Virus record (IMG/VR): IMGVR_UViG_3300033182_000674
Coordinates: 155,677-219,676 of that record
Length of the DNA stretch: 64,000 nucleotides
Direction: 5' to 3' (one strand)
Notes under the pieces: generated by a model
Told to the model about the DNA's origin: nothing
Seen by the model: only the letters and a program-made list of their open reading frames with translations
Databases searched by the model: none
Translations under genes and position numbers: made by a program
Shown: piece by piece, positions 14,395-38,913 of the stretch
How the letters are laid out: every line of letters starts with the position of its first letter
How positions within the stretch are numbered: the stretch's first letter is position 1

Positions 14395-14402
14395 TATTTA
14401 TA
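14395..14402 (-). promoter_or_regulatory. T4-type late promoter TATAAATA
   Basis: Exact consensus on the minus strand in the intergenic gap, 50 nt upstream of the 4627-aa gene. Confidence 0.8.
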
Positions 14403-23587: not shown

Positions 23588-23595
23588 TATTTATA
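23588..23595 (-). promoter_or_regulatory. T4-type late promoter TATAAATA
   Basis: Exact consensus immediately after the last gene of the radical SAM cassette, 40 nt upstream of ATG 23548. Confidence 0.8.
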
Positions 23596-23601
23596 TGAGA
23601 T

Positions 23602-24000
23602 CTACGACACAGAGAAAAACTCTTCCTCATAATATTCTCTAATATCAGGTATCATTCCTTCCATTGGAATAGGAAAATCTATATTATCTAATAAAAATTC
23701 ATAAACTTCTGGGCTTTCATCATATGTTTTATAGTATGGATCATTACCATATAACAAATCGGGATCCATTAATAGATCCCTAAAGTCTTCTTGAAAATCT
23801 TGACTTATCCAATATGCATAACAAAAAGCAACAACATAACTTTTTGCTGGATATATCCATTCATCTACTCTTTCATAAAAATGCCGTAATGCATTATTCT
23901 TTAAATCATGTGATAAAGTAATTTCTATTTTATTTAGATCATCTTTAAAATAATGGTTTAATTTATGAAATACTTCTTGTCTTATTTTCCATTCTTGCAT
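23602..24000 (-). CDS. Hypothetical protein of the radical SAM cassette (132 aa)
   Basis: ORF overlapping the upstream rSAM gene by 38 nt; aromatic/acidic; no family recognised. Confidence 0.7.
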   Translation of the reverse strand: MQEWKIRQEVFHKLNHYFKDDLNKIEITLSHDLKNNALRHFYERVDEWIYPAKSYVVAFCYAYWISQDFQEDFRDLLMDPDLLYGNDPYYKTYDESPEVYEFLLDNIDFPIPMEGMIPDIREYYEEEFFSVS

Positions 24001-24898
24001 AATCTAATAATCCTTTGTAGCCATTACACGAATTAGTTAGGTCTGTTACATATCTATAATGTTCAGTTAAACAGTGTCCATAATATTCACATTGCTTACA
24101 TATTTCGCTTGTGTTTACTTCAGCTTCATTATCTGCCCATTTCAAATAATCATCAAATGAATCAAGCTCTAAGAAATATTCATTGTCATTCTTATCGAAT
24201 TCTAATACTGCAAATTTGCCATTTGGTGTAATATAAACATGATCATTTGAAAATGCATTATATGTTTTATTTAATGAATCTTCAATATGATATTCATTAA
24301 TAAATTCAAAGCTTTTTTCCACAGGACTTTCTAACCATTTAATAATAAAATCTTCAAAGTCTTTATGTGTTACATTTTGTTGATTAGCTTGATTAGTCGA
24401 ATATGGTTTTATTTCAACTGAAGTAATTGCTCTACACATATTTAATTGTGTAATCATATGATCAACATCCATTTGAATAACCTTTTCTGATGCTAATATA
24501 AGAACAGCAATTGGTACTTCAGACATAAACATATTATTAAATACTTTTTCACTTTGTTCTCTTGCATCGAAATCATATGATACTGATAACGTAATATCAT
24601 CATCAAAGAAAGGTTGATAAACTTTTGAGAAATTAGTATTAATATTAATTTTACCAGTATAATAATTTTTTATAACATTCTTTAACTGATAAAAATAAGA
24701 CTTAGGCATTGCTGTTATTTCTCCGCCATATAAATCTACGTGATCTATATTTGGAACTTGAGATAATAACTCATCTAATTGGCCTAAGTCTATTCGCTTT
24801 TGATCTTTTAATTGCTCAGGTGTTAAATAACAAAAATCACAATTGAAATTACAAAAATAACTTGGATTAATTGATAGATTCATATCTAATATACTCAT
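23963..24898 (-). CDS. Radical SAM protein with C-terminal Cys cluster (311 aa)
   Basis: NPSYFCNFNCDFCY (CxxxCxxC), LYGGE, C-terminal CKQCEYYGHCLTEH...C. Confidence 0.9.
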   Translation of the reverse strand: MSILDMNLSINPSYFCNFNCDFCYLTPEQLKDQKRIDLGQLDELLSQVPNIDHVDLYGGEITAMPKSYFYQLKNVIKNYYTGKININTNFSKVYQPFFDDDITLSVSYDFDAREQSEKVFNNMFMSEVPIAVLILASEKVIQMDVDHMITQLNMCRAITSVEIKPYSTNQANQQNVTHKDFEDFIIKWLESPVEKSFEFINEYHIEDSLNKTYNAFSNDHVYITPNGKFAVLEFDKNDNEYFLELDSFDDYLKWADNEAEVNTSEICKQCEYYGHCLTEHYRYVTDLTNSCNGYKGLLDYARMENKTRSIS

Positions 24899-25916
24899 TA
24901 ATATAAGGTGTTAATTCACGCTCAACTGCATTAGCTTCAAGAATCTTTGGAGCTAACTGTTTCATATGATAGCAATGATCTTCTACCATATTATGATTTT
25001 TTAAATCTTTAATTGTTTTCTTACAACCATTACATATCTCAAACATAGGACATGTGTAACATGCTTGTTTTAAACTACTTAATTCTAAACTATTCATTAA
25101 TGGTGTAAGAAACTCGCCATTCATTTCTCTTTCCCAATCAATGGCCATATCTCTATCATCGCCAAAAGCACCACACGTATAATAGTCACCTTCAGGCTGT
25201 ATAGTTCTTATACCAGCATCACATCCTCTATTTTGTGGACATACTGTTGGTTCACCTTGCAAACGTTTCATCATTTGCATTGTATTAAATTCCCATGAAG
25301 CTAATCCAGCTTCCCATATCTCAACATATTTTTCATATATTTTAGATAAGCGATATGGTTTATCTTGATCGCCACTTGACATTGCATAATTCAATTTACA
25401 TACAACATCCATTTCTTTTGCAAGTTCAACTGTACGTATAGCACTCCATTCATTTTCTTCTGTTATAACAGCAATAAAGTCTGGACGATAACCACAGTGT
25501 TCTAACATTGCATCTGATGCTTTCCAAAAGTCCGCTTCAGTAAATACTTTACCATCACCCATTAGTCTTCCTTTACCATATTGAAATGATGTACATACTC
25601 CAACTCGGGGGTGATTAAATAAATCAACCCATTTTTTTGGTTTAACAACAAATGGCCAAAGATTAGTTGTTAATGATATAGTGGCGTGTGAATCTACTTT
25701 GTCTAAATACTCAATAATCTTCCAATAATAACTTGGATGCATCATTAATGGATCTCCACCATTTACAATAATAGTATTTGTCTCTGGAAATCTATCGATA
25801 AATTGGTAGATACGATCTAGATCTAGTTCTGATGTATGATCATCAGCTATCTTAGTGCTTGAACAGAAAGTGCATTTAAAATTACACTTTTCTGTTGGTT
25901 TAATAATTAAGTCCAT
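24867..25916 (-). CDS. Radical SAM/SPASM protein (349 aa)
   Basis: KPTEKCNFKCTFCSS, NGGDPL, SPASM-like CPQNRGC...YYTC...CYTCPMFEICNGC...C. Confidence 0.92.
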   Translation of the reverse strand: MDLIIKPTEKCNFKCTFCSSTKIADDHTSELDLDRIYQFIDRFPETNTIIVNGGDPLMMHPSYYWKIIEYLDKVDSHATISLTTNLWPFVVKPKKWVDLFNHPRVGVCTSFQYGKGRLMGDGKVFTEADFWKASDAMLEHCGYRPDFIAVITEENEWSAIRTVELAKEMDVVCKLNYAMSSGDQDKPYRLSKIYEKYVEIWEAGLASWEFNTMQMMKRLQGEPTVCPQNRGCDAGIRTIQPEGDYYTCGAFGDDRDMAIDWEREMNGEFLTPLMNSLELSSLKQACYTCPMFEICNGCKKTIKDLKNHNMVEDHCYHMKQLAPKILEANAVERELTPYINEYIRYESIN

Positions 25917-26370
25917 CTATATCATACATAAAGTTGGCGACTATTCTTACATCATCTGTATGAATAACCTTGTGTTGAACGTTTGGTGCTTGGCTTAACA
26001 TAATTAAATCATATTTACTAGGTTGAATAATACCAGTTTTTTCATTATTCATTCTAACCATTAACTCACCATTATTTTTTATATCAGTCATATAATATAA
26101 AAAGAATATATTATAACCTTCTCTTAGATCATTATGCCATTCACATGTAGAATCTTCTGATCCTTTCCATATTGAATGATCTGTTTTATTATAATTACCA
26201 AAAAGCGGTATTACATACTTATCTACAATATATTTATTTGCTTCATTAATATCTATATTGAGCATTTCAAATTGATTATCGTTTACTTCTGGAACATCAA
26301 TAAAAGAATATAACTCCTTATCGATAGTTTGCGCATAACCTTTTATAATAAAATCACTAAAATCAATCAT
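25900..26370 (-). CDS. 2OG-Fe(II) oxygenase-like protein (156 aa)
   Basis: WHND (HxD), following IFFLYYM strand, GELMV, distal QHKV and RIVANF. Confidence 0.7.
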   Translation of the reverse strand: MIDFSDFIIKGYAQTIDKELYSFIDVPEVNDNQFEMLNIDINEANKYIVDKYVIPLFGNYNKTDHSIWKGSEDSTCEWHNDLREGYNIFFLYYMTDIKNNGELMVRMNNEKTGIIQPSKYDLIMLSQAPNVQHKVIHTDDVRIVANFMYDIDGLNY

Positions 26371-26851
26371 CTAATACTGCTTTAAAAGTAAATTTTAAAA
26401 GTTTTCTTGGAGAAGTATTTTCAAAGTTTGTTGCTCTATGTAAAACATCACCATTAAAGAATACTGCTCTTCCTTTTGCAATATTCACATTATGGATATT
26501 GCCGTTATAATCCTTTATTTCTAATGGATCTTCACAATCTTCTAAGTATACAACAACAGTAAAACTAACGTCAGGAATTTCTATATTATCTTCTTCTAAA
26601 TTATCTGGATGAAATTTATAAGAACCATAATCTAAATTATTCGCTAATAATTTTGCGGTACTTAATTTATATCTTTTACCAAGATAATCATTAATTTTTT
26701 CTATAACATAAAAAGCACTCGGTGGAATAATACAATCAGATCTTCCATCACCCCAACTCCAATCTTGAGTTTCATTGGCATATTCTTTAAATATAATATC
26801 GTCAACAAAATCGTCAACAACTTTCCATTCTGGATCAAATACTCTAATCAT
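26363..26851 (-). CDS. 2OG-Fe(II) oxygenase-like protein (162 aa)
   Basis: FHPD (HxD), SFTVVVYL, GRAVFFNGDVLHRA, RKLLKF (2OG-binding Arg). Confidence 0.8.
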   Translation of the reverse strand: MIRVFDPEWKVVDDFVDDIIFKEYANETQDWSWGDGRSDCIIPPSAFYVIEKINDYLGKRYKLSTAKLLANNLDYGSYKFHPDNLEEDNIEIPDVSFTVVVYLEDCEDPLEIKDYNGNIHNVNIAKGRAVFFNGDVLHRATNFENTSPRKLLKFTFKAVLDD

Positions 26852-27866
26852 TCATTTTATCTGCATATTTAAATGTTTCTTTATAAACACAACCATCAAA
26901 GTCACGTTCTAATCTTTTCCAATCATTTCTAACAAAACAACTAAATGGACATCTATTATAATATTCACAACTAAAGCAATCATGATCATTTAAAAACTTT
27001 TCAATAATTGCATCATTGGTATCAGATATTATAGTAATAAAGTCTTCGGTATCTTTATGTTGTCTTATTCTACAACTTGATGTCCTATTATCTGCTTCCA
27101 ATAATAATTTATTTACACTGGGACAACTCATTTTATTTAATGATGCGTTATTAGTAAAAGCAGATAAGTTAGTACATTCTGGATAATGATCTAAAAGGAA
27201 TATATTAAAATTATATAAGTCTCTCTCACTTGGAACAAGTGTATTTGGAACAGTAGGACCTGGTGTCAATTGATCCCAATAACATGGGAATAGACTATAG
27301 AGATAATCAAAATATTCATCACCATTATTTTGAAGGCGATACATACTTTGTTTAGTTGCAACAAGACATATTAAACTAATATGGTCCTTAAAAATTTCTA
27401 TATTTTCTTTGAATATTTTAAATTGTGCTGGATTAAATCTACCTGTTATATCATAACTTACACTTAATTTTAAATTATGTTTTTGTAGCCATTCAAGCAT
27501 AATAGATGTATTATCAAATACAAGATTACTTACAAAATTGAATGTTACAGACTTATCTAATTCATTACATAATTCATTTACACCATCTATAAATTCGTCA
27601 TAGATTGGTAGATATTCATCAAACAAATGATCTTGAAATAATTCGCCACCCATTATATTAAGAATATAATGATATTTGGTATTGGTATTAAAAAAGTCTC
27701 TTATTACATCAAGCTTGGAAAGTATTTGCTCTTTACTTTGACCAATTTTAGATTCATGATCTTGAAAGCAGTGTATACAACGTAAATTACATTCCTCAAA
27801 AAAGAATATTTCTAATTCTCCAGAGTCAGGTATTTTACTTTCTATAACACTTTGTAAATAACTCAT
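26844..27866 (-). CDS. Radical SAM protein with C-terminal Cys cluster (340 aa)
   Basis: FEECNLRCIHCFQ, MGGELF, C-terminal CPS...SSC...CFSCEYYNRCPFSC...C. Confidence 0.9.
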   Translation of the reverse strand: MSYLQSVIESKIPDSGELEIFFFEECNLRCIHCFQDHESKIGQSKEQILSKLDVIRDFFNTNTKYHYILNIMGGELFQDHLFDEYLPIYDEFIDGVNELCNELDKSVTFNFVSNLVFDNTSIMLEWLQKHNLKLSVSYDITGRFNPAQFKIFKENIEIFKDHISLICLVATKQSMYRLQNNGDEYFDYLYSLFPCYWDQLTPGPTVPNTLVPSERDLYNFNIFLLDHYPECTNLSAFTNNASLNKMSCPSVNKLLLEADNRTSSCRIRQHKDTEDFITIISDTNDAIIEKFLNDHDCFSCEYYNRCPFSCFVRNDWKRLERDFDGCVYKETFKYADKMND

Positions 27867-27883
27867 AATAAAAATAAATTAAT

Positions 27884-28933
27884 TTACTTAATTGTAAATT
27901 TAGCTAATTTATCTAATTCATCTTCTTGTTTAAGCGATCTAATATATGTAACAAATGGCAATACAATAGAACCACCTAGTGTAAATGGCAAATAGATTAA
28001 AGCAATTTTTTCATCTAAAATTTCTTGTAAAGCAGATTCAAACTCTTCATCTGTTAGTTCACCTTTATAAACCGAATCAAGATATTTAAACATCATTTCA
28101 GAAGAAATTGGTGATTGAATACCGGTTCCGCTTTGATTGAATGCCATATCACCATAAATTGCACTAGTAACTTTTTGTACAATATCAACGAGCTCTTTAA
28201 CTTCTTTTTCTGTACCATTAGATATATCTAATTTAGAACCAGCTCCACCAACATATGCTTTTCCAATCTCTATGCTTTTTCTGTTATTCCAACAATTATT
28301 AACAAATGGTTTCATACCAGGAAGCTCTTTATAGTTTTTAATAGTTTTCCCTGAGCCGCCTAATAATTCTTGTAAATCATTATCTAAAATTAATATATCA
28401 ATATGGCGACGACACTCTAAAATAGTATCTTCATATTCACGCTTAATCATTTTAGACATTAATGTTTTGAGTTTACTCTTATGGCTAGATCCAGAATCAG
28501 CAAACACAGATGCAATTAAAAATTCATATGAAGGCATATAATCAATATGACTATAATCTCCTTCTTCTGTATCTTCAAAAGAATCTTTCATAATTTGAGC
28601 TAATTGTGTATTTTGCTTTCCATACATTTCAAGTGTATGGTTATAACAATCAACCCATACATCAAATGAATCTTGATCAAAGTTTACGGTTGACTTAAGC
28701 CAATGAGTAGCAATTTGTGCAAAATGAAATGTATCAGCATAGATAGTAACTTTTTCATTCTTAGTAAAGCCAAGTTGAATAACTGATTGTGGTGTTAATG
28801 TTTCTGCCGCAGCAATTATAGATTTAGTATTATAAACATTACCACCATATTCTTTTGATACAACAATACAAGTGTCTAATGTATTAAGATAAGTATCTTG
28901 TTCTAAAAATACATTGTTAAATAAATGGATCAT
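27884..28933 (-). CDS. Hypothetical protein of the radical SAM cassette (349 aa)
   Basis: Long ORF with a 4-nt ATGA overlap with the upstream gene; no family recognised. Confidence 0.8.
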   Translation of the reverse strand: MIHLFNNVFLEQDTYLNTLDTCIVVSKEYGGNVYNTKSIIAAAETLTPQSVIQLGFTKNEKVTIYADTFHFAQIATHWLKSTVNFDQDSFDVWVDCYNHTLEMYGKQNTQLAQIMKDSFEDTEEGDYSHIDYMPSYEFLIASVFADSGSSHKSKLKTLMSKMIKREYEDTILECRRHIDILILDNDLQELLGGSGKTIKNYKELPGMKPFVNNCWNNRKSIEIGKAYVGGAGSKLDISNGTEKEVKELVDIVQKVTSAIYGDMAFNQSGTGIQSPISSEMMFKYLDSVYKGELTDEEFESALQEILDEKIALIYLPFTLGGSIVLPFVTYIRSLKQEDELDKLAKFTIK

Positions 28934-29637
28934 GCTTTTAGCTCCTGCATTGTTTGCAATTTATCAAACATTTTATGATAGTCTTCTATATCTAAACTAC
29001 CTGATGCCATACTATGTGTTAAAATAAACATTGGGTTGTTTCTATTTGCCCAATAACTAAATAAGTTTTTACCTTTAAAAATATATTCATTGAAAAACTT
29101 AGGATAATATCTTAGGTTATCTGATTTAGTTTTTTCAAGCAATGAATATAATGAATCTCTTTTTAATAAACTAACAAAATTAACACCTTTCATATCACCA
29201 TCATCTTCAGCAATTGGTGCATTTTCACTAAACTCTTTAAAAGTTTCGTCTTGAATTGAATGCATATTATATAGTGTTAAACTATCAATTCTTTGTTCCC
29301 AAATATCTAGTTCTTTAGAATACTGTTCTAATACATCTGAATCTATAACTGGAATAATACCTCTTTTTTGCATTAATAAATTAATAATAACTTCTTCAAG
29401 CAATGGTATATTAACTATCGATGTTGAGTTAAGATATACTCCAACCATTTCAACCAATTCATCTGGCTCAGTAATATTTAAATCACAAGGAATATCTAAA
29501 TTACTCAAATATGTAATAAGCTTTTCGCCTTTTAAATTTGAATCTTTATAGTTAATAATAAATTTAGTTTCTTTATCTTCAAAATATAGTTTCAACAAAT
29601 CTATGGAAATAGGTGCTGTTGTTTCAATAATATTCAT
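28930..29637 (-). CDS. Hypothetical protein of the radical SAM cassette (235 aa)
   Basis: GAGGAA Shine-Dalgarno right after the precursor stop; no family recognised. Confidence 0.8.
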   Translation of the reverse strand: MNIIETTAPISIDLLKLYFEDKETKFIINYKDSNLKGEKLITYLSNLDIPCDLNITEPDELVEMVGVYLNSTSIVNIPLLEEVIINLLMQKRGIIPVIDSDVLEQYSKELDIWEQRIDSLTLYNMHSIQDETFKEFSENAPIAEDDGDMKGVNFVSLLKRDSLYSLLEKTKSDNLRYYPKFFNEYIFKGKNLFSYWANRNNPMFILTHSMASGSLDIEDYHKMFDKLQTMQELKA

Positions 29638-29646
29638 AATTTCCTC

Positions 29647-30606
29647 TTATCTTCTGCCACGCGAACCATGACAAGAACTATGACAGCTCGAATGACAAAC
29701 ATCTGTTTGAATAGCTAAATCAGCTGTAGTAGATTGTGCAACCTGCTCCCAAGCGCTTTTTAGAGCATTAAAGTAATTTTCAAGTACACCTGCGGTTATA
29801 ACATAACCTTCTTCAACGCGCATAATCCCATTAATAGCATGTATTCCACCGGTCCAATTTGCTTTTACTTGTCCTACATCAGTTAAATATGAATCATCTA
29901 ATAATGCGTATTTGGTTTCATCAAATGCGATACCAGGATTAGCATAAGTTCCCTTATTTCCGCCTCCGCCAGTTACATTTAATTTAACATTCATTGTTCT
30001 AACACGAGTATATCTATTTGTTTCCCATAATATAGCTTTCCATATTACATATGCTGCAATTGGATTTTCTACTCGCTCAACAATCATATCACCTTGATCA
30101 TCTAAAATTGGTTCAATTGTTAAAATACCATCTGCTGCAGTATCTGCTTGTGCTTGAGCTTTAAATGCTTTTTCAACTGTTGAGAACTTCTCAGTTAAAC
30201 ATCTAGCATACCAATATTGTAAACCACCAATTTCAGCATCACGTTGTAAGTGTGTATTATATAACTTAGCTACTTTATCAACTAATGCTGGACCAGTACC
30301 AGTTTCATATAATAACCAGTCTTCTCTTGGACCATGCGGTAGTGGTCCGTCCCACATTGTAAGATATGTGCCATCTGATTTGCGTATTTTGGCTTTATAA
30401 AAAGTACCTAAAACAAACCAAGACCCATCACTTGGAATTACTTGAGTTATAGGTGTGCCCCAACCGCTAAAGGTAAATCCTTCATACGGTAAATTGTTAG
30501 CAGACCAGACATTAGGATCAGTATGAAAACTATAAACTGCTTTCGCATAATCTAAAAATCTTGGTACAATTTCTTCTTTTTTAACAGGATTAGTTAAACT
30601 CGCCAT
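29647..30606 (-). CDS. Putative modification substrate / precursor protein with C-terminal CHSSCHSSCHGSRGRR (319 aa)
   Basis: Directly downstream of and overlapping an rSAM/SPASM gene; terminal (C-H-x-S)x3 motif; internal DUF4214-like segment. The CDS is secure; the substrate role is inferred. Confidence 0.7.
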   Translation of the reverse strand: MASLTNPVKKEEIVPRFLDYAKAVYSFHTDPNVWSANNLPYEGFTFSGWGTPITQVIPSDGSWFVLGTFYKAKIRKSDGTYLTMWDGPLPHGPREDWLLYETGTGPALVDKVAKLYNTHLQRDAEIGGLQYWYARCLTEKFSTVEKAFKAQAQADTAADGILTIEPILDDQGDMIVERVENPIAAYVIWKAILWETNRYTRVRTMNVKLNVTGGGGNKGTYANPGIAFDETKYALLDDSYLTDVGQVKANWTGGIHAINGIMRVEEGYVITAGVLENYFNALKSAWEQVAQSTTADLAIQTDVCHSSCHSSCHGSRGRR

Positions 30607-31630
30607 TTTGTTTATCCAAATGAATCATTAATAGTTTAGGTGCAGGACAGACATCGCCTTCCCACGGTAATTGGTGGCAATCTCCACCACAATATTTAAA
30701 TACAGGACATGAAAAACATTTAGGATTTCTTCCTCGTTCTTCAGCTATATTTTGTAATCTTCTAGGACTATTTATAAGGTTTTCTATAGAATCGTTTATA
30801 TGACCAAATTGAAATGTTGGCGCAGAATTAGGACAACCTGAAATAGTACCAGTTGCATTAATGGTGAAGATCTTTTCTTCGCAATCTCTACAGAAAGTAC
30901 CACATGTATTTAATCCATTTTCAAACTTAGCATATACATCTTCAAGGAATGAATTTTCAAACCAATTTCTTGCACCAACTTCTTCTGATTGTAAATGCAT
31001 TTTTAAGAACCATTCATTAATTTCCATATTGGATGGGAATATATCTGGATGCTGATTTGCATTACCATCTCTTGTTAATCTTTCAAATGAAACTTCTTGA
31101 ACACCAAGCTCTTTACAAAACTCTAATACTTTAATTGGTTCCATGTTTATTAGTCCTTTTGTAACACTAATAAACATTCTAATTGTTACGCCACGTTTTA
31201 ATAATGATTTAACATTTTTATGCCATAGATTATATTGTCTATCATTATCAAATCGAATATCTGGATCCCATGATGTACCAATACGATTATTTAAACACTC
31301 TTCAATAAATGAATAATGCTCATCATACATTTTAAATGTTAAATTTGATGTAATGCCCCATGACATATCAAGCCATAAGTCTTTACACTCATTATAGACT
31401 TTACGCATTTCAGAGACATGAACAAGAAAAGGCTCACCACCATGAAATTCACAATGAGCCGTATCTAATAAATTAGGTCTATGTTGTCTAAAACGCTTTA
31501 ACCAATCTGCTATTTTATTTGGATTCCAATATTTCTTTGGACCGTTGATTCCATTCGTAAAGCAATGACGGCAATTAAGATTACACGTTTCAGTTGTCTT
31601 TAGGTAGAACATCCATTGCATCATCAGCAT
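30590..31630 (-). CDS. Radical SAM/SPASM protein (346 aa; start may be 31624)
   Basis: KTTETCNLNCRHCF, FHGGEPF, SPASM-like CGTFCRDC...SGC...CFSCPVFKYCGGDC...C; AAGGA lies 5 nt before ATG 31624. Confidence 0.92.
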   Translation of the reverse strand: MLMMQWMFYLKTTETCNLNCRHCFTNGINGPKKYWNPNKIADWLKRFRQHRPNLLDTAHCEFHGGEPFLVHVSEMRKVYNECKDLWLDMSWGITSNLTFKMYDEHYSFIEECLNNRIGTSWDPDIRFDNDRQYNLWHKNVKSLLKRGVTIRMFISVTKGLINMEPIKVLEFCKELGVQEVSFERLTRDGNANQHPDIFPSNMEINEWFLKMHLQSEEVGARNWFENSFLEDVYAKFENGLNTCGTFCRDCEEKIFTINATGTISGCPNSAPTFQFGHINDSIENLINSPRRLQNIAEERGRNPKCFSCPVFKYCGGDCHQLPWEGDVCPAPKLLMIHLDKQNGEFN

Positions 31631-32111
31631 CCTTTAGTTTGTTTTGTATAAAATTTTCAAGTCCAAAACTTAACATTAATGATTCATAGTAATTTGTTGC
31701 GCAATGAGGTGTGTTTGCTGGTATAAAAATAGATTCACCTTCATTTAATATAACTTCATCATTTCCAACAATTAATGTTTTAGTTCCTTCTACACAAAGC
31801 ATATAAACATCATCTGGATCTTTATGCATTGGAAATGAGTATGCATCTTTAGTTGCATAAAAAGCATGACATGTCACTGGACCATTATGTTCGTAATGTA
31901 ATGCTAATTCCTTACAATAATCAAATATCTCTTGATTATATTTTTCTAAACTTTCAATCTTTATAGTGGCGTGGCTATATTTTGATAATTCAAGAGAACT
32001 TTCAAGAACGGTATTTCTACCTTCATCATCTATAATAGACACAATCCTTTCTTCGTAAGGAATCAAATCTTTATTATATAATATTTCAACCAAATTGTAA
32101 ACTGAAAACAT
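31590..32111 (-). CDS. JmjC/cupin-type oxygenase (173 aa)
   Basis: SFPMHKDPDDVYMLCVEGTKTL and GESIFIPANTPHCA: HxD...H triad in a JmjC (YcfD/ROX-like) context. Confidence 0.85.
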   Translation of the reverse strand: MFSVYNLVEILYNKDLIPYEERIVSIIDDEGRNTVLESSLELSKYSHATIKIESLEKYNQEIFDYCKELALHYEHNGPVTCHAFYATKDAYSFPMHKDPDDVYMLCVEGTKTLIVGNDEVILNEGESIFIPANTPHCATNYYESLMLSFGLENFIQNKLKDADDAMDVLPKDN

Positions 32112-32125
32112 GACAAATTCTTTCG

Positions 32126-33235
32126 TTATAATTTAAGAATACATTCAACTAATTTTAAAGCTTCGCTATAATTATCTTCTAACGCAATACCAACTAATCT
32201 TCCAGTACCATTTACAGAAGCTATACCATTACTTGATACATATACACCTTCACCTTTCTTAACTGGATCAGTAACTTTAACAGGAACTCGACCAACTAGT
32301 GCAAGAGGTACACCACCTTCTAATTCACTATTCATAAGAACAGCTGGCTTTTCAGAGATAACACCCACAGGACACACTGTTGCATTGGCTGCGGTTACTT
32401 CTTTTTCTCCACCAACCATCATTACTGTACCAACTTCATATTCTTCATCTGGTAAATATTTCTCAGCCAAGTCAGCGTATTGAGCAAATTGAGCAACACC
32501 AGACATAAAGGTAATGTATGCATTAGAAAATGGACTACCGGCTGTACCGATTTGACGACCAGATCCTGATGCTTTAATATTGGCCGCCATTGTGACGTCA
32601 TCATTAAATGTTTTTAAGCTATTAATCGCTTGATTAACATCCGTATACACAACACCTGATGGCATTACCGCACGATCTAATTGCGCGCCTGATGTGGCAA
32701 TCTTACTAATTGGAATAGTAGGTAATAAAGCTAAATCAAATGTTTCACCAAAAGAAGCTGATGTTCTAGATGCAGGTAACGACGGAATAGTATTCAAATA
32801 TAGAACACCTGTGTCGATCCAACTCGCATCTAATAATGGAATTCTACCACGGCCTAATACACCAGAATTAATTTTATTTGCATCTAATGATGGAATTCTT
32901 AGTGGATCAAATTGACCAGTAGTAATTTTTGCTGCACTTAAACTAGGAATATCGGTTTCTTGTAATACATCACATGTATATGTAAAGACAGCATTAGATG
33001 GATCATATGTTAAATTACTATATGTTCCTTGACCATTTTTTGTAACAGTAAATAAGTTTTTCGCTTCGGTTTCAGTGATAAACTTAGTTTCCATTGAATT
33101 AATTGCGTCAACAATAGTAACATCAGTATCAGTAATTAGATTATCTAAATCACCAACCCATGTGCTAAGACAATTCGTCTTTTGACGCCATGCTTCTAGC
33201 GAATTACTTAAATCAACATATATCGTTCTAGCCAT
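32126..33235 (-). CDS. Fibre protein with C-terminal peptidase G2-like autoproteolytic chaperone (369 aa)
   Basis: LEAWRQKTN N-terminus, IPSLDANKINSG repeats, C-terminal YADLAEKY...GVISEKPAVLMN...ALVGRVPVKV...KGEGVYVS...VGIALED. Confidence 0.75.
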   Translation of the reverse strand: MARTIYVDLSNSLEAWRQKTNCLSTWVGDLDNLITDTDVTIVDAINSMETKFITETEAKNLFTVTKNGQGTYSNLTYDPSNAVFTYTCDVLQETDIPSLSAAKITTGQFDPLRIPSLDANKINSGVLGRGRIPLLDASWIDTGVLYLNTIPSLPASRTSASFGETFDLALLPTIPISKIATSGAQLDRAVMPSGVVYTDVNQAINSLKTFNDDVTMAANIKASGSGRQIGTAGSPFSNAYITFMSGVAQFAQYADLAEKYLPDEEYEVGTVMMVGGEKEVTAANATVCPVGVISEKPAVLMNSELEGGVPLALVGRVPVKVTDPVKKGEGVYVSSNGIASVNGTGRLVGIALEDNYSEALKLVECILKL

Positions 33236-33458
33236 TCTGATGTACCTTTTGAATTAATTCCTTAAGAAGATCTTTAATTTCTCCAACCTCTGTTTTTAAA
33301 TTTTCAAGATCTTGTTTTTCTTGTTTCCTAGCTTGTTTAATTTCCTTTAATCTATCTATTTCAGATTGATTATCACATAATATAGCATTTGTTTTAGGAT
33401 CACGATATAAACCACTATGATCCTTGACTGGTATTAACCTATCACGTATATCACTCAT
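33228..33458 (-). CDS. Conserved small hypothetical protein of T4-like phages (76 aa)
   Basis: Track start 33476; ATG at 33458 follows the DUF4815 stop (TAA-T-ATG); LYRDPKTNAIL motif plus coiled-coil C-terminus. Confidence 0.7.
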   Translation of the reverse strand: MSDIRDRLIPVKDHSGLYRDPKTNAILCDNQSEIDRLKEIKQARKQEKQDLENLKTEVGEIKDLLKELIQKVHQNG

Positions 33459-33459
33459 A

Positions 33460-36400
33460 TTAATTTGCCAATGCAATTGCTCTTAAATCTCTTACCACTG
33501 GTACTTTACCCATAGTAGTTGAAGTAAAGACTAGTTTTAATTGGAAGGTATCAAAATCATCAAGTGTTCCATCAACACCACCAATTGTATATTCATAGTC
33601 TCTGAAAATATTTTTATTTTCATCTGATGGTACTAACGAATCAGGTGTTGCTAATGTCCACTCTTTCTCATAAATACCGTCTGAACCTTGAGTTGTTCTA
33701 TAATAGACATCCATTCTACATACAGAAGGTCTGTTTGCAGCAATCAAAACTTTTAAACCACTTGCATTATTCAATAATGATACTGGTTTAGTTATGTGTT
33801 TAGCTGCTGCTGAACCACCTGTTGCAGAAGTTTCTGGTACAAAACCAATAACTTCATTATATCCATTACCTGTTCCTGGATTATCTATAACATTTTCAAT
33901 CATAGTTAAACTTGCACGTTGCATATCAACAACAGGTGAAACATATTTGTTAGACGATGTCATATTAACTGTAACAATCGCAGACTTAGATACCGCATTA
34001 TAAGATGCAGGATTTTCTTGACCTCTATCTCTAATTACTCTTGGATAATTGTCTAATGGATTATCTTCATTATTAATTAAACTAAAGTGTTCAGTTGGAT
34101 CTTGCGCATATAAACTTTCTTGACCAGCATATGATTGAGTCGAAGTAAACTGACCTTTTAAATTATATGCAGAGCCAGTTGGTTCCAATACAGCAATTGC
34201 TGGTTGAACAGAATTGAATGCAAAACATTGTGTTACAACAACCGAGTTACCACCAACAGGTGTAGGAGCAATAGGACTAGGTGGTGTGACACTAAATCCA
34301 GCAGGCTTATCAATTGTATAACCTGTATGATCTACTTTAACAATAGTATGATCATCATTCAATGCATTTAATCCAGATATAACAGAATTATCAACACCGT
34401 CAATTGTTACAGTATTACCAACTTGGAATCCATGTCCTGGATGTAAAATCTTGATATATTGAGGATTTGTTTCAGTTGGATCATCATCCCACCATAATAC
34501 AATAGGATCAAATTGTAATAACTTACGAGGAGGAGAATGATTAACAAGAACAGCTTTACCTGATGCATTATCACCAAAGTTTGCTTTGTGTAAATCAAAC
34601 TTAAGATCTTCCCACTGTAATGCTTCCCAAGTCGATGCATTTTGAGATTTAAATAATGAACCATAGAATGCTTGCTTAGAAATTCTCTTTTCAGTTGTTC
34701 CTAATTCAAACTCACCAACTTTAGACATCCATACTTTATATGCTGGTGTTACAGTTTGAACCATAACTGCATATTCAGTATTACCTTTAAGATATACTGG
34801 CTCATCAAATTCAAAGTCAGTACCAACAGTAGCATCTGCTGAAGTAACAACATCACTAGACTGTAATAGCTTATATGAACCAGGAAGAATATCAGTAGAT
34901 GAAGGATAACCATTAACCATTGGTCTTAGTTGTACCCATACTGGATTTTCATCTTTAGATTCAAAATAAACAGTAACTTTAGTTGCAAACATACCTGCAG
35001 GATCTGTTACTTTAAATGATTGTGCAATTGGATCGCCACCATCACCGTCACCTGGATCAGGTTGGAAGTTAGTCCAATTAACAGAACTTTCAACAACAGA
35101 TGTTTCTACACCAGTTACTTCTAAATGACGAGTTGAAAGAATATCTTTTTGACGTGTATGTAAATAACCAGTTGAAGTAAAGATAGTCTTTGCTTTACTA
35201 ATTGCATCTTTTTCTTTAGGTATAGAAATATCTAATAATTTAAATTCATTCTCACCTGTTCTAAATCTTCTAGTATTATTATTAGGAATAAAGAAGACAC
35301 CTTCAACAGTACCTTGAGCATCAGTATATAGTTCATCAGCTCCACCAGGAATTGCTTGAGCTAAGTCATAAATATTACCTGGTTCAATCTTATCTGCGTC
35401 AATATTAGCATTCATCATTTCAATTGCTTTACGAGAGAATGATTCTCTTCTACACCAAGATGAAACATCAGCATTATCAAAGAATGGCCACACTCTAGTG
35501 TTAGGCATTAAGCCTTCACCTTTAAATGAAACATAGCGTGATCTCATAAATGGAATTAAGTCAACACTTACTTCACGATCACCAATTTCTTCATGTACAA
35601 TATTAGAACTTGTAATTGTATTAACAACTGTTGTAACAGTATCATCTCTCCACGATGTTGTGCGAGTACCACCGCCTTCTCTGTTACTTGTTTGTCTATT
35701 GGTACTACCAGTAACATGAGTTTGACTAACAGAGTCACCTACACTTAATTGATTCGGATCTACGCCGTGCCAGTTAAAGTTCCAATCATTCCATCTTAAT
35801 GCACCTTCGTAATGAACAACTGTGCCATTATCAATAATGTTTGGATCCATGTACTCTGTAACATGCCATGTATCAGATGCTGGTGATAATGTAATATGAC
35901 CAGGATAATCTAATGTCATATATGGATTAACTTGAATAGTCGAGTTTGCTTGATCATGTGAGATCGCAACTTCTTCAGTATAATCTAAATAAACATTATC
36001 ACCTTTAAGTACAGTATTAGATGATAGGTTTGGTTCAAAATATAAACCAATATGCTTTGATAGATATCCAGGACGAACGTTCTTATTTAGAATATCAATA
36101 GACGCTCTATATTCAGGATTTCTTGTATCTGCATTATATCCTGATGCAAAATTATCAACAAAGAAACCAGACTTAGCTCTATTACGGCCATCAGCATCCA
36201 ATACATCAATATTTTTAGTATCTAATTCTAATAATGATAATGCTGTTGTTCTTTCGATTTGAGTAATTCTCTTATCCAATTTACCGATATCACGCATCGT
36301 ATAACGACGATTATCGATCATTGTATAATCTACATAATCAGGACCAGAAACATTACCTGGCATATCAATAGTATATAATGCCATTGAGTTATCTGGCGTT

Positions 36401-38913
36401 TGTGGATATGATGGATTATCTGAAGGTGTACCTGTAACATAATTAAATGCACCAAGTTCAGTTAATACTAACTTATCTTTTCTATCAGCGTAATATGTGA
36501 TATCACCTAATAATACATCACCATCTTGTGGAATAGGACGTTTAATTGAGTTACCACCAACAAACTTATCATCATCTCTCGTTGGTCTAAAATCTAGGTG
36601 TTGTAATAAGTCAATATTATCACCATTGCTATTCACATATGTTGGCTCTTCACCAGACGGATATGAATTAACACAGAAGAAATCACCTGAAGTACTGTGA
36701 ATATAATATTCATATTCAACATAAAGTGTATTAGAAGGTGGAACTCTTCCAGCTTTTGCAATTAATTTACCAATTTGATAATGAGTATCTCTTTGGCCAT
36801 TATCAAGAGTAAATGTACTCATTGCATCTGGACCAGAGGCACTATTAAATTTAAGTACATTAACTTTAATAACATCAGAGTTAAGTAATTCAGCATAGCC
36901 TTTGGCTGGATCATATGTAATAGTAGTTTGCTTTAATCCTTTTGTTTTGACAGATGGAATTAAACTTGCTGTTTCGTAATAAACAACATGAACAACTTGA
37001 TCTTGTAAACCAAACACACCAGCATTAATATCAATTGTACCACTAGTTGTACCAATACCAGAAATAGTAACATCAGTTACTACACTTAAAGGTGTATATG
37101 TTCCATTACCTTCTGGTTTTAGAATAATCCAATCAGAAGAATTACTTAATGTACCACTACCAGTTCCTACAGAAATTTGTGTAATACTATTACTTGTTAA
37201 TGTAACCTGTTGTGTCTTTTGAATTCTAGCACCTTGCATAGATGAAATATTTTTAACATTTCTTCTACCAACGGGGAAGATCATATCAGAATTATTAACT
37301 TCTTTAATGAGTACTTTATTTCCTGTTAATTCTGGAACAACATAAGAAGGAGTATAAATTGCACTTGATGGAAGTTGTGGAACATTTGTCCAAGGATAAA
37401 CAGTTGGATCTACACCATAGGCATTAGTAATTGCTTTTGGAACACCAATACTTCTTGCATAATCTTTAAATGTAAACTTCTCACCTAAATTAATTCTTTG
37501 TGCAGTGCCGCTATTTGTTTCTTCAAGCATTTGAATATCCATCAAATAGACTTTATATTGTCCATTTCCAATAGCTTCAACTGCTTTAATTCTACATGTA
37601 CCAATCCAATAATAAGTACTTGATGCATCTGCTGGAGCATTACCAGAGTTTAATGGAAAAACTGCTGCATCAGAACCAGTATCAATTGCTGGTGTAGTAG
37701 TTGGATCTAAGAATGCATTTGATTGACTTGAAATAACAAGACGATCTAAATCTTTTACACCAGGTAAACCTTGTAATTCATCAACGATTACATAGTAACC
37801 ATAGTCAACGCCAACTGCGTCATCTTCATATGTAATTTCATCATTAATTGGTTTATCTACATCAATAAATGTGGGTGTTGGTTTAGTAATTCTAAAACCA
37901 TTAACATACGCAATACCAGGACTAATTCTAGCAGTTAACTTAGTAGAATCTGTTTCATGCTCATCAAATCTAAATTTAAATGGTTGAACAGTATAATCAC
38001 CAGACTCTTCTTCTGTTCTTTTAGCCATTAACTCATTGATCTTATTATAACCTTCATATCCAGTTACTTGATCAATAGCTTTTGAGTTTTCAATAGTCGC
38101 ATAATAAATGAATGTATCTGATGAACTAATATTAGCTTTGTCAATTAACTCAAGAGTAATCTTTAATCTATCTGCACCAGGCGCTGTTGTGTTAGGTAAT
38201 AAACCTTGATTATCAAATAATGATGGATCATCATTTGGTGTTATAACTTCTTCATACGCTCTGAAACCAACTGTACCAGTATAATCATCACTATACTTTG
38301 ATAAGTATATAGTTTGTGATGGAGCTCTAACAAAGAAACCTAAAGCAAAAAATTCAGCTTGATTAACTGAAATGGTAGTGCCTTTACCTGTTGCAGGATT
38401 AAGAGTAGTATTTGTGGTCTGTACTTTTAATACAGCATTACCATCAACTTCGTTTAAGTCTTCACCTGCTGCTACAACAGGTGATGTTGTTTGTGATGTA
38501 ACACCTGCTGCAATTGCTGCTCTATCGGTATAACGTACATATAATGTTGCAGGATCAGTCGCTGTAGCAGCAAGGATATCAACAACTGTACATCTAATAC
38601 CAGTCGTAGCACCTTCAAAAGTTCTGCCAATAAGAGTTGTAATATCAGATGGCAAATTAGTAACAGCATCTAATTTAATAAATTGAATTTTTCTATCAAT
38701 TTTGGCACCGCCTGGATTTGCAGCAGCACCTTCTTTAAATATATTACGACCAAAGATTGCAATTTCTTCTTGAATGATAGTTTGTAGCTGAGTTAACTCT
38801 CTAGCTTGCAAATGTCTTTCATTATTAAATAAGATTCTATGATATCCCTTTTCGATATCAAAGTCATCTCTATATTTGCTTTTAAGAGTATTCGCTGTTA
38901 GTTTTGTAGCCAT
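33460..38913 (-). CDS. DUF4815 / VrlC-like large virion structural protein (1817 aa)
   Basis: YRDDFDIEKGYHRILFNNERHLQARELTQLQ...IFKEG; NRAKSGFFVDNF; DPIAQSFKV; C-terminal FQLKLVFTS...VPVVRDLRAIALA. Confidence 0.85.
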   Translation of the reverse strand: MATKLTANTLKSKYRDDFDIEKGYHRILFNNERHLQARELTQLQTIIQEEIAIFGRNIFKEGAAANPGGAKIDRKIQFIKLDAVTNLPSDITTLIGRTFEGATTGIRCTVVDILAATATDPATLYVRYTDRAAIAAGVTSQTTSPVVAAGEDLNEVDGNAVLKVQTTNTTLNPATGKGTTISVNQAEFFALGFFVRAPSQTIYLSKYSDDYTGTVGFRAYEEVITPNDDPSLFDNQGLLPNTTAPGADRLKITLELIDKANISSSDTFIYYATIENSKAIDQVTGYEGYNKINELMAKRTEEESGDYTVQPFKFRFDEHETDSTKLTARISPGIAYVNGFRITKPTPTFIDVDKPINDEITYEDDAVGVDYGYYVIVDELQGLPGVKDLDRLVISSQSNAFLDPTTTPAIDTGSDAAVFPLNSGNAPADASSTYYWIGTCRIKAVEAIGNGQYKVYLMDIQMLEETNSGTAQRINLGEKFTFKDYARSIGVPKAITNAYGVDPTVYPWTNVPQLPSSAIYTPSYVVPELTGNKVLIKEVNNSDMIFPVGRRNVKNISSMQGARIQKTQQVTLTSNSITQISVGTGSGTLSNSSDWIILKPEGNGTYTPLSVVTDVTISGIGTTSGTIDINAGVFGLQDQVVHVVYYETASLIPSVKTKGLKQTTITYDPAKGYAELLNSDVIKVNVLKFNSASGPDAMSTFTLDNGQRDTHYQIGKLIAKAGRVPPSNTLYVEYEYYIHSTSGDFFCVNSYPSGEEPTYVNSNGDNIDLLQHLDFRPTRDDDKFVGGNSIKRPIPQDGDVLLGDITYYADRKDKLVLTELGAFNYVTGTPSDNPSYPQTPDNSMALYTIDMPGNVSGPDYVDYTMIDNRRYTMRDIGKLDKRITQIERTTALSLLELDTKNIDVLDADGRNRAKSGFFVDNFASGYNADTRNPEYRASIDILNKNVRPGYLSKHIGLYFEPNLSSNTVLKGDNVYLDYTEEVAISHDQANSTIQVNPYMTLDYPGHITLSPASDTWHVTEYMDPNIIDNGTVVHYEGALRWNDWNFNWHGVDPNQLSVGDSVSQTHVTGSTNRQTSNREGGGTRTTSWRDDTVTTVVNTITSSNIVHEEIGDREVSVDLIPFMRSRYVSFKGEGLMPNTRVWPFFDNADVSSWCRRESFSRKAIEMMNANIDADKIEPGNIYDLAQAIPGGADELYTDAQGTVEGVFFIPNNNTRRFRTGENEFKLLDISIPKEKDAISKAKTIFTSTGYLHTRQKDILSTRHLEVTGVETSVVESSVNWTNFQPDPGDGDGGDPIAQSFKVTDPAGMFATKVTVYFESKDENPVWVQLRPMVNGYPSSTDILPGSYKLLQSSDVVTSADATVGTDFEFDEPVYLKGNTEYAVMVQTVTPAYKVWMSKVGEFELGTTEKRISKQAFYGSLFKSQNASTWEALQWEDLKFDLHKANFGDNASGKAVLVNHSPPRKLLQFDPIVLWWDDDPTETNPQYIKILHPGHGFQVGNTVTIDGVDNSVISGLNALNDDHTIVKVDHTGYTIDKPAGFSVTPPSPIAPTPVGGNSVVVTQCFAFNSVQPAIAVLEPTGSAYNLKGQFTSTQSYAGQESLYAQDPTEHFSLINNEDNPLDNYPRVIRDRGQENPASYNAVSKSAIVTVNMTSSNKYVSPVVDMQRASLTMIENVIDNPGTGNGYNEVIGFVPETSATGGSAAAKHITKPVSLLNNASGLKVLIAANRPSVCRMDVYYRTTQGSDGIYEKEWTLATPDSLVPSDENKNIFRDYEYTIGGVDGTLDDFDTFQLKLVFTSTTMGKVPVVRDLRAIALAN

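Follow-up and report, generated by a model that had tools for sequence, protein, structure and literature searches.

A radical SAM cassette in the tail module

A cassette of 11 genes, rich in radical S-adenosylmethionine (radical SAM) enzymes, was found in a 64,000-nucleotide stretch (the window) of the IMG/VR virus record IMGVR_UViG_3300033182_000674, a contig of 219,676 bp. We consider it reasonably probable that the cassette is a dedicated maturation system for a virion protein of the tail module, with the short Cys- and His-rich tail of one of its products, protein X, as the hypermodified substrate. This reading is supported by the invariance of the tail, its co-occurrence with the enzymes, the type of these enzymes, the presence of an X homologue, gp170, in the virions of phage Atu_ph07, and the likely late expression together with the tail module.

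The cassette occupies positions 23602-32111 on the minus strand. In the order of transcription it consists of the genes cupin, R1, X, o235, o349, R2, Ox1, Ox2, R3, R4 and o132. Besides X and the cupin, these encode four radical SAM enzymes (R1 to R4), two small 2-oxoglutarate (2OG) oxygenase-like proteins (Ox1 and Ox2), and three proteins without a recognised fold (o235, o349 and o132). Neighbouring genes overlap by 4-41 nt or stand 9-17 nt apart. The initial annotation of the window had described a tightly overlapping series of 11 genes, and all open reading frames (ORFs) were recovered on the minus strand with exactly the coordinates and the order it had given.

The C-terminal tail of X

X is a putative substrate and virion protein of 319 aa (29647..30606, minus strand). 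Its last 16 residues, the tail, read CHSSCHSSCHGSRGRR (codons at 29650..29697, minus strand), and the protein ends in VCHSSCHSSCHGSRGRR-stop, that is, V-CHSS-CHSS-CHGS-RGRR-stop. In the first 66 distinct homologues the end reads [V/I]-C-H-x-S-C-H-x-S-C-H-x-S-R-[G/S]-R-R-stop, with one Ala at the last Ser; apart from this Ala and the three x positions the motif is invariant. Judged from such conservation across homologues, a chance origin of the motif is excluded.

In a wider set of representatives, the strict form of the tail (Ser or Ala at the last repeat) was present in 137 of 190 proteins. In most of the remainder a Ser is replaced by Asn, or sometimes by Ala, Asp or Gln, and a few X proteins lack one C-H dyad or have a different end. 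The constants of the wider family are three Cys-His dyads at four-residue spacing and an R-x-R-R carboxy terminus, summarised as (C-H-x-[S/N])x3-R-x-R-R-COOH, and the number of repeats is fixed at three. The "CHxS" tail of the initial annotation therefore stands as regards the three C-H repeats at the C-terminus, but the fourth position is Ser or Asn, and not strictly Ser. The tail contains no Asp or Glu, and is far better conserved than the rest of X, in which the N-domain diverges.

Proteins of the X family measure between 124 and 319 aa; the largest is the window copy, which contains an insertion of about 130 aa. Their N-domains fall into at least two classes that are not linked by BLAST. 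Tails fused to large fibre proteins were looked for, but none was found, all X proteins being within 124-319 aa. The AlphaFold2 (AF2) model of X has a predicted local distance difference test (pLDDT) score of 66 and consists of a small alpha/beta core. The tail follows the last core beta-strand directly, with falling confidence, which suggests that it is exposed. In the PDB, fold search gave no match for X, and profile search nothing significant. A search of BFVD with the model matched the family itself, including Atu_ph07 gp170. In the same database, the fold of three proteins of the uncultured Myoviridae sp. ctijX18 (A0A8S5USJ7, A0A8S5USJ8 and A0A8S5USV2; 504-660 aa) resembles the model (Foldseek E 5.6e-5 to 0.16), and these may be larger relatives of the X N-domain. 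X, the small X class, o132, o235 and o349 gave no match in NCBIfam even at E<=10, HxsA and HxsD included, and a Pfam search found no peptidoglycan-binding domain in X.

Four loci with Tyr at the x positions of the tail have four 2OG oxygenases each. This association cannot be interpreted, because all four loci belong to one lineage.

Co-occurrence of the tail and the enzymes

For comparison, about 200 IMG/VR loci with the tail were fetched. Gene neighbourhoods were analysed by phmmer searches of the ORFs of 82 loci with the window proteins, and by a separate clustering of all cassette ORFs. The enzymes accompany the tail in essentially every fetched locus, as well as in cultured phages, and the co-occurrence in other genomes on which the initial annotation had made its reading depend is thereby present.

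The family is widespread. In IMG/VR, 103 loci encoding an X relative were found, together with at least 120 stretches in a DNA-pattern scan for the tail, and an X profile retrieved 764 clusters (50% identity) among 1.84 billion representative proteins. Every full-length genome or large contig of the set measures at least 218 kb, and the host bacteria live in soil, plant-associated, freshwater and marine habitats.

In the 82 loci, the order U3-u2-U1-Cup-R1-X-o235-(o349)-R2-(Ox)-R3-(Ox)-R4-o132 is nearly constant, U1, u2 and U3 being structural genes that precede the cassette (see below). R1 lies immediately upstream of X in this main architecture, and there are few loci in which the two do not adjoin. 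Each of the 50 cassettes that are complete to the last gene has one R4 and one o132, and 45 of the 50 carry three radical SAM enzymes of the R1-R3 class; a cupin was likewise found in 45. Other parts vary. The 2OG oxygenases belong to two families, with 0-4 copies per cassette. A B12-binding radical SAM enzyme of 556 aa (KedN5-like C-methyltransferase, 84 bits), absent from the window, occurs in 29 loci (for example L006, L041:12369-14036 and L085), and a further radical SAM family, Rx, in 12. The 2OG oxygenases, the B12-binding enzyme and the extra radical SAM paralogues are accessory.

In a second architecture, U1 is followed by two tandem X genes (~125 aa each), 2-6 Rx paralogues and R2, with R1, R3, R4, o132 and the cupin nearby (L074, L080, L081, L088, L104, L129, L146-L148, L193, L195 and L202). 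These loci lack o235 and o349 and have up to about 10 radical SAM genes each. As judged from the gene content kept in both architectures, the universal set is the adjacency to a fibre gene, the tail, the cupin, R1 to R4, and o132.

Cultured phages carry the system as well. The cassette DNA had no similarity match among 50,697 phage records, and tblastn with the window X gave none either; homologues were reached via R1. With this protein, tblastn found the jumbo phages Atu_ph07 (490 kb), Sinorhizobium phage Phosso and Pseudomonas phage pPa_SNUABM_DT01 (DT01), and the Ralstonia/Burkholderia phages RSL2, RSF1, the FLC phages, S13 and RsoM3USA. The R1-type genes found are 48% identical, as are Atu_ph07 gp171 and RSL2 ORF067 to the window R1, and R1 is common to cultured phages of Agrobacterium, Sinorhizobium, Ralstonia/Burkholderia and Pseudomonas. 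Tail and cassette were read directly in Atu_ph07, RSL2, RSF1 and DT01. The gene after the R1 homologue ends in ...CHSSCHASCHNSRSRR in Atu_ph07 of Agrobacterium (gp170), in ...CHSSCHTSCHGSRGRR in RSL2 of Ralstonia (ORF068), and in ...CHTSCHTSCHSARGRR in DT01, which has six radical SAM enzymes. The RSL2-type X is also present in the FLC phages, S13 and RsoM3USA. Phage proteins with a CHxS tail next to radical SAM genes, which the initial annotation had mentioned, therefore do exist in Atu_ph07, RSL2/RSF1 and pPa_SNUABM_DT01.

The strictly conserved residues of the tail, three Cys and three His at fixed spacing, are classic metal ligands, and the Ser position varies. This would also fit a motif that binds a metal or an Fe-S cluster and is left unmodified, in which case the targets of the enzymes would lie elsewhere, for example in the U1 and U3 fibres. 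The tail could then form a metal site in an oligomeric fibre tip, comparable to the His-x-His iron sites of T4 gp37, or a cluster or electron carrier for the enzymes. In the same direction point the 4-10 radical SAM enzymes, which are more than a 16-residue tail seems to need, and the U1 fibre gene, which is as constant a neighbour as X. Still, we regard this explanation as unlikely. R1 and X are neighbours in almost every locus, and neither the exact length nor the R-x-R-R end, both conserved, is needed for a bare metal site. Furthermore, SPASM enzymes typically modify Cys-containing peptide segments encoded next to them, and a redox carrier would be unexpected in virions.

X was found in only 3 of 185,579 species genomes, in all three cases on phage-like contigs of metagenome-assembled genomes (MAGs). 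On these searches the family is restricted to phages, and a cellular origin of X, or a role as a prophage toxin, was rejected. The three contigs were binned as Bdellovibrionaceae (L083, DDVI01000089.1), Rhodobacteraceae (L084, FZLS01000078.1) and Marinovum (L085, NZGN01000038.1). L083 and L085 carry a full phage cassette, and L084 (11.9 kb) a fibre gene with two tandem X genes; most likely, all three are mis-binned phage contigs.

An X homologue in phage particles

The X homologue of Atu_ph07, gp170, was identified in the virion proteome of this phage by electrospray ionisation tandem mass spectrometry (31.89 kDa, 8 unique peptides, 35% coverage, bands 1-9; PMC6102473 Table S5). The mass computed for the Atu_ph07 tail protein, 31,894 Da, fits the listed mass and confirms the gene numbering. 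X is thus a virion protein in at least one phage, and the published proteomics supports the suggestion of the initial annotation that the modified protein is a virion component. The virion list also includes gp176, which is U1-like, and gp177; the radical SAM enzymes, the cupin and gp169 are not on it (PMC6102473). One virion-gene cluster of Atu_ph07 comprises coding sequences 170-215 (PMC6102473), and therefore starts at X.

The migration of gp170 is anomalous. It was most abundant in gel band 1, the uppermost, which contained proteins of 127-139 kDa, whereas other Atu_ph07 proteins of about 30 kDa peak in bands 7-8 and fibre proteins of 61-80 kDa in band 2 (PMC6102473). This fits an oligomer resistant to sodium dodecyl sulfate (SDS) or a covalent adduct.

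The presence in the particle also bears on the possibility of a classical ribosomally synthesised and post-translationally modified peptide (RiPP). The N-domain of X would then be a long leader, and the modified tail would be cleaved off and released as a diffusible bioactive compound with an antibacterial, anti-defence or signalling role. A C-terminal core, many tailoring radical SAM enzymes and a B12-dependent methyltransferase, as in the 29 loci above, are typical RiPP features, and the tail stays fixed while the N-domains vary. However, the X homologue was detected in the virion at 35% coverage, the cassette always stands beside fibre genes within the late structural operon, and no cassette encodes a protease, an exporter or an immunity gene. 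Folded leaders of 110-300 residues would be unusual as well, and neither the short leader-core precursor nor the RiPP recognition element (RRE) and the leader protease or exporter of a classical cluster were found. We therefore consider a released peptide distinctly improbable. With these hallmarks missing, protein maturation describes the system better than the term "RiPP-like" of the initial annotation.

Radical SAM enzymes

The four radical SAM genes lie on the minus strand: R1 (radical SAM/SPASM, 346 aa, 30590..31630), R2 (340 aa, with a SPASM-like Cys cluster, 26844..27866), R3 (radical SAM/SPASM, 349 aa, 24867..25916) and R4 (311 aa, 23963..24898). In family alignments of 19-20 homologues for each, the CxxxCxxC motif is invariant in all four families (C16/C20/C23 in R1 and R4, C26/C30/C33 in R2). 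Because it is located within the first 33 residues, the enzymes lack a leader-binding domain at the N-terminus. The family phrog_1802 "radical SAM" is matched by all of them, with E 1e-27 to 4e-62 (R2 1.5e-27, R4 4.5e-31). With the Pfam model Radical_SAM (PF04055), R3 scores 36.5 bits, above the cut-off, and R1 (27.8) and R4 (24.9) just below it; R2 matches only Fer4_12. The presence of four radical SAM enzymes with CxxxCxxC motifs, noticed in the initial annotation, is well founded on these alignments.

The SPASM model TIGR04085 (cut-off 27 bits) is defined by a C-terminal seven-Cys motif, which holds two auxiliary clusters. R1 passes with 35.8 bits, R3 is just below with 24.6 bits, and R2 and R4 have no match. 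Conserved C-terminal Cys residues number eight in R1 (seven invariant and one nearly so), and eight, six and four invariant ones in R3, R2 and R4, respectively. The SPASM assignment, previously made for R1 and R3, thus stands and extends to R2, which is SPASM-like on account of its six Cys. R4 lacks the seven-Cys motif and is twitch-like, its four Cys leaving room for one auxiliary cluster.

Over their full length, R1 and R3 align best, within NCBIfam, with peptide and protein maturases of the PapB, DynA, anSME, YhhB, DarE and QhpD type. PapB ranks first for R1, and DynA first for R3 and second for R1; the best full-length matches of R1 (PapB, DynA, anSME and YhhB) all score about 40 bits. A family profile of R1 found, with weak matches, anSME (E 1e-7) and the triceptide maturase ChlB (1e-6; 9gm3) as the nearest solved structures in the PDB; single-sequence searches of the PDB with R1 and R3 gave no match. 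Since the full-length matches are maturases, and all remain below the curated cut-offs, R1 to R4 appear to form a separate, divergent SPASM clade, which is protein-maturase-like and outside every curated family. R3 is the best-conserved gene of the cassette, with 1381 clusters (90% identity) at E<=1e-5; the top 120 clusters are 67-80% identical, in addition to one near-identical cluster at 99%.

Matches of the radical SAM enzymes to MoaA, NrdG, viperin, HxsB and HxsC are confined to the N-terminal cluster region, where R2 also has weak PapB and viperin matches. The first three of these families, together with the labels "MoaA", "Fe-S oxidoreductase" and "dihydrofolate reductase" on homologues in existing records, raise the question whether the product of the enzymes is a small metabolite, a cofactor or a modified nucleotide, with X unrelated to them. 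We judge this very improbable. Such matches reach 21-35 bits against cut-offs of 126-284, whereas the matches that extend over the full length are with peptide maturases; SPASM Cys clusters occur as well. The linkage to X and the fibre genes is universal and phage-restricted, and the cassette contains no nucleotide-metabolism genes. A grouping with QueE, NrdG or MoaA, named in the initial annotation as an outcome that would speak against protein maturation, was not seen. In PADLOC, the N-terminal core of the radical SAM enzymes drew no more than weak matches of the viperin type, and hence no membership in a known defence system is indicated.

Iron oxygenases and partner proteins

The first gene of the cassette encodes a cupin of 173 aa (31590..32111, minus strand), which was present in 68-69 of the analysed loci. 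It matches Pfam Cupin_2 with 41 bits, and H96, D98, H136 and K111 are invariant in 19 homologues. The protein is a probable Fe(II)-dependent oxygenase. With JmjC_2 (PF08007), the score of the whole protein is 30.5 bits, above the cut-off of 22, which is not reached by any stretch taken singly. In the PDB, the family profile favours generic Cupin_2/quercetinase structures (1e-10), with MINA53 only at E 1.5e-3. The term "JmjC cupin" is therefore correct in that this is a cupin with an H-x-D...H triad, and over-specific as regards JmjC.

Ox2 (156 aa, 25900..26370, minus strand) can be assigned to the 2OG-Fe(II) superfamily by its motif, H-x-D...H and a basic residue, with W78-H79-x-D81, H133 and R142 invariant in 20 homologues. 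Its match to Pfam 2OG-FeII_Oxy_3 (E 0.006, 17.9 bits) lies below the cut-off of 27; a related cassette family (f8) passes Pfam with 35.7 bits. The Ox2 family occurs in 56 loci with 0-2 copies each. Ox1 (162 aa, 26363..26851, minus strand) is a probable, weakly 2OG-like member. It matches phrog_274 (E 3e-11) and nothing in Pfam, and its H-P-D, distal H and R align with both 2OG families of the cassette at an hhalign probability of 10-23%. Given this weak support for Ox1, the three Fe/2OG-type oxygenases first proposed become two solid ones, the cupin and Ox2, and one probable one.

In RSL2 (ORF073, L002:18042-18578) and RSF1 (ORF077/078, L086:17673-18789), small cassette ORFs are annotated as "dihydrofolate reductase". 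Papers on the RSL2-like phages FLC6 and S13 call the cassette genes gp80 and gp82 2OG-Fe(II) oxygenases, and the reductase label looks doubtful.

The products of o235, o349 and o132 had been taken for orphans, which they are not: all three are conserved families, present in 50-75 of the fetched loci. The 235-aa protein o235 (28930..29637, minus strand; phrog_20767, E 5e-55), encoded after X in the main architecture, belongs to a family found in 75-77 analysed loci. It has no invariant residues of catalytic type and no match in Pfam, NCBIfam or the PDB, profile search of the PDB included. The divergent 349-aa protein o349 (27884..28933, minus strand) has family members in 62 loci; only four columns of the family alignment are invariant, none of catalytic type, and nothing significant was found in PDB or protein-family searches, including a search of the PDB with the family profile. 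Rather than being enzymes, o235 and o349 more likely act, we infer, as partners of the larger X class.

The last gene, o132 (132 aa, 23602..24000, minus strand), accompanies R3-R4 in both architectures. Its family has 16 invariant columns, among them Y-P-x-K-S-Y. The AF2 model is confident (pLDDT 90) and shows a mostly helical domain, with no PDB match by fold search and nothing significant by profile search. A PqqD-like RRE was considered for this protein and is unsupported: since the fold search of the PDB returned nothing, o132 contains no recognisable RRE of the PqqD type.

Comparison with known maturation systems

Among working systems, the bacterial HXS defence is the closest analogue. 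In it, HxsB, HxsC and HxsD mature HxsA, a protein with five basic His-x-Ser repeats (PMC13128918). A change of +8 Da maps to the last repeat (S-H-R-S-S), next to Arg, and HxsA blocks the entry of phage DNA from the periplasm (PMC13128918). As in the phage system, a folded protein with short basic repeats is encoded with more than one radical SAM enzyme and a small partner protein. The biology is similar too, in that HxsA works at the step of DNA entry at the envelope and X is encoded in a tail module. The differences are substantial. R1 scores 33.2 bits with HxsB (TIGR03978, cut-off 370), and R3 and R4 score 32.1 and 15.8 bits with HxsC (TIGR03977, cut-off 268), all limited to the N-terminal core. 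The phage repeat has a period of four, an invariant Cys before each His, and exactly three copies at the extreme C-terminus; H-x-S does occur within each C-H-x-S unit, but the Ser is often Asn. There are 4-10 radical SAM enzymes plus oxygenases in phages against two radical SAM enzymes in HXS, and the phage system is virus-encoded and its product packaged, while the cell exports HxsA to its periplasm.

X might, in analogy, be a viral counterpart of HxsA, that is, a virion-borne protein with a radical SAM-hypermodified His/Cys repeat, which is brought to the envelope with the tail and acts in DNA entry. There, the tail, cross-linked, basic and possibly metal-loaded, might open the entry channel or guard it, keep out superinfecting phages, or act against periplasmic gatekeeping of the HXS type. 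This extension is tentative, and we give it a low but appreciable probability.

PapB is the top NCBIfam match of R1 and aligns over the full length, but R1 (43.6 bits) and R2 (25.4 bits) are far from the cut-off of 340 (NF047865) and are not members. PapB acts on C-x3-D/E motifs, and the phage tail has no acidic acceptor. CrpC introduces ranthionine cross-links into the whole Cys-rich protein CrpA (PMC13692751). PapB and CrpC resemble the phage enzymes as SPASM radical SAM enzymes acting on tandem short Cys-containing motifs encoded alongside. However, CrpC has a predicted RRE (PMC13692751), whereas the phage enzymes begin at the cluster motif. One enzyme suffices in these systems, and at least four are conserved in the phages.

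Cyclophane, darobactin and dynobactin maturases offer a second comparison. SPASM enzymes of the XyeB, GrrM, FxsB, YhhB, ChlB, DynA and DarE type link an aromatic or imidazole side chain to the C-beta of residue i+2. The His-x-[Ser/Asn] of the phage tail has the same spacing, and DynA and ChlB are among the closest relatives. On the other hand, the phage enzymes score 26-46 bits against cut-offs of 370-650, and the known substrates are short exported leader-core peptides in which Cys takes no part.

In general build, the phage enzymes agree with anSME (TIGR03942; PDB 4k36-4k39): the length is about 350 aa, the cluster motif stands at the extreme N-terminus, and there is a SPASM domain but no RRE; anSME is also the best solved relative of the R1 family. 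It oxidises the Cys or Ser in a C/S-x-P/A-x-R motif of a folded protein, and the C-x-x-x-R spacing recurs in the last phage repeat, C-H-G-S-R. In the phage tail, though, G, S or N takes the P/A position, X has no sulfatase domain, there are four paralogues instead of one, and R1 (39.4 bits) and R3 (40.2 bits) are no members at a cut-off of 349.

QhpD, another SPASM radical SAM enzyme, installs several Cys thioethers in the gamma subunit of quinohemoprotein amine dehydrogenase, a small protein that is kept in a larger assembly, and an oxygenase finishes the maturation. R1 aligns with this family (TIGR03906) over residues 10-320, but with 29 bits against a cut-off of 453, and X has neither the context of a Trp-derived quinone nor Asp/Glu acceptors. 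The CXXX-repeat maturases (TIGR04115) are more distant: R1 scores 20.3 bits against a cut-off of 350, and three fixed repeats contrast with many CXXX repeats.

Proposed maturation of X

We propose that X is expressed late and associated with the tail, and that its flexible C-terminal tail is the dedicated substrate of the adjacent enzymes. The core set would comprise the cupin, four paralogous radical SAM enzymes of anSME size, three of them SPASM-type and one with a single auxiliary cluster, and o132. The 2OG oxygenases, the B12-dependent enzyme and the extra radical SAM paralogues would be lineage-specific additions.

The folded N-domain may present the tail, and folded proteins are the substrates of anSME. 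The radical SAM enzymes would then take hydrogen atoms off tail residues, leading to cross-links within the tail. From the motif, we infer that two chemistries fit best. One is a three-residue link from His to the C-beta of residue i+2, for which His-x-[Ser/Asn] has the right spacing, as in the triceptides and the His-Tyr link of dynobactin; cyclophane-forming radical SAM enzymes use this i/i+2 spacing. The second chemistry would give Cys thioethers like the ranthionines formed by PapB and CrpC. Hydroxyl groups could be added by the Fe(II) enzymes, with His, Arg and other residues as candidate targets. Matured X would be placed in the baseplate or fibre region, beside the U1 fibre, where a rigid, basic, and possibly metal-binding tail may serve the stability of the particle, or the step of envelope contact and DNA entry.

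Several points weigh against this proposal. Modification of the tail is deduced from the motif and from analogues, and the variation of the fourth repeat position (S, N, A, D or Q) weakens any model that requires Ser. None of the enzymes reaches the cut-off of a curated NCBIfam family (20-46 bits against 268-650), and with scores so far below, reaction types cannot be assigned. ORF families, profile searches and fold searches of the cassettes gave no RRE, protease or exporter. The 4-10 radical SAM enzymes exceed the needs of any known maturation system for a 16-residue tail, and some of them may act elsewhere. As for the virion, the evidence comes from one phage and one preparation purified with polyethylene glycol (PEG), the position of gp170 in the top gel band could be due to aggregation, and the records of RSL2 and RSF1 carry no virion flag on X.

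Novelty and significance

Searches of the literature for phages in combination with radical SAM, RiPP or SPASM returned no description of this system, in agreement with the statement of the initial annotation that it fits no characterised phage pathway. In the papers on FLC6, S13 and Atu_ph07 (PMC6102473), the homologous enzymes are listed as accessory genes or not mentioned, and the tail protein is mentioned in none; nor are radical SAM enzymes named in a large comparative review of jumbo phages. The known substrates of maturation by radical SAM enzymes are secreted peptides and a few cellular proteins, and a case in a virus particle has not been described in the searchable literature. Precedents for whole proteins as substrates are HxsA (PMC13128918) and CrpA (PMC13692751). 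New are the setting of a virion component and the scale of 4-10 radical SAM enzymes.

With 764 clusters of X and more than 1,300 of R3, the system is widespread, and the cultured carriers Atu_ph07, RSL2/RSF1, the FLC phages, S13 and pPa_SNUABM_DT01 are open to direct study. If the proposed maturation is correct, it would represent a new cross-linking chemistry on a C-H-x-S/N repeat, carried out by 4-10 paralogous radical SAM enzymes, and a new principle of virion construction or host entry, and possibly a mirror image, on the phage side, of the HXS defence, which was described recently. The misleading labels "MoaA", "dihydrofolate reductase" and "Fe-S oxidoreductase" in existing records would be corrected as well. 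Should X be a counterpart of HxsA, radical SAM protein maturation would operate on both sides of the conflict between phages and their hosts, and X would be the first case of a virion structural protein hypermodified by enzymes.

Genomic context and late transcription

The cassette is embedded in a tail module, as proposed in the initial annotation, with T4-type baseplate genes upstream (gp48/54-, gp53-, gp5-, gp6- and gp8-like) and fibre genes on both sides. Between the baseplate genes and the cassette lie an Mtd_N fibre gene, the genes U3 (1817 aa, DUF4815/phrog_358) and u2 (82 aa, phrog_473 "virion structural protein"), both within 33228..38913 on the minus strand, and then U1. U3 is co-located with the cassette in 48 of the 82 loci and u2 in 34. 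U1 encodes a tail-fibre-like protein of 369 aa (32126..33235, minus strand; phrog_19602 "tail fiber") directly before the cassette, and adjoins the cassette or X itself in both architectures. Its C-terminus is a domain of the intramolecular-chaperone type (Pfam Peptidase_G2 IMC domain, 26.2 bits). In RSL2 and RSF1, the gene at the U1 position is annotated as a virion structural protein. Genes for giant structural proteins and for an 837-aa fibre, which has a Peptidase_S74 chaperone domain, stand downstream of the cassette.

The T4 late-promoter consensus octamer TATAAATA occurs eight times in the window, and six of these copies fall within the 3.1% that is intergenic (binomial p 2.5e-8), 7-57 nt upstream of gene starts. 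Four of the intergenic copies are on the minus strand (14395-14402, 23588-23595, 46743-46750 and 54300-54307) and two on the plus strand (54823-54830 and 56917-56924). By analogy with T4, the phage probably uses T4-type late promoters. No copy was found between U1 and the cassette, and one stands directly after o132; on the same analogy, this distribution makes it most likely that the cassette belongs to the late structural transcript. A further T4 late-promoter-like copy lies inside R1 (30769..30776, minus strand), 163 nt upstream of the start of X, and is possibly an extra promoter for this gene.

Positions 24001-30000, inside the cassette, have a G+C content of 26-30%, compared with 32-36% in the flanking structural genes, which may reflect a composition bias or a different history.

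The Ralstonia phages RP12 and RP31, relatives of RSL2, have a different radical SAM cassette by their structural genes, with a 537-aa radical SAM enzyme, a 360-aa anSME-like protein, a 382-aa ORF, a 419-aa "MoaA" and a 278-aa "MgoB" (PMC5468394). Neither phage was matched by tblastn with R1, and this cassette may be a replaced or alternative maturation module.

Two further features of the window concern structural genes. The gp5-like baseplate hub appears to be split, with its N-terminal part in a 281-aa ORF (50396-51241) and the remainder in a 677-aa ORF (46754-48787), separated by a 535-aa protein with an amidase/endolysin domain (48792-50399). At 462-14345 lies a 4627-aa ORF whose size and position are similar to those of gp180, the 4449-aa "T4-like structural protein" of Atu_ph07; the gp180 gene, too, is a few genes away from the cassette.

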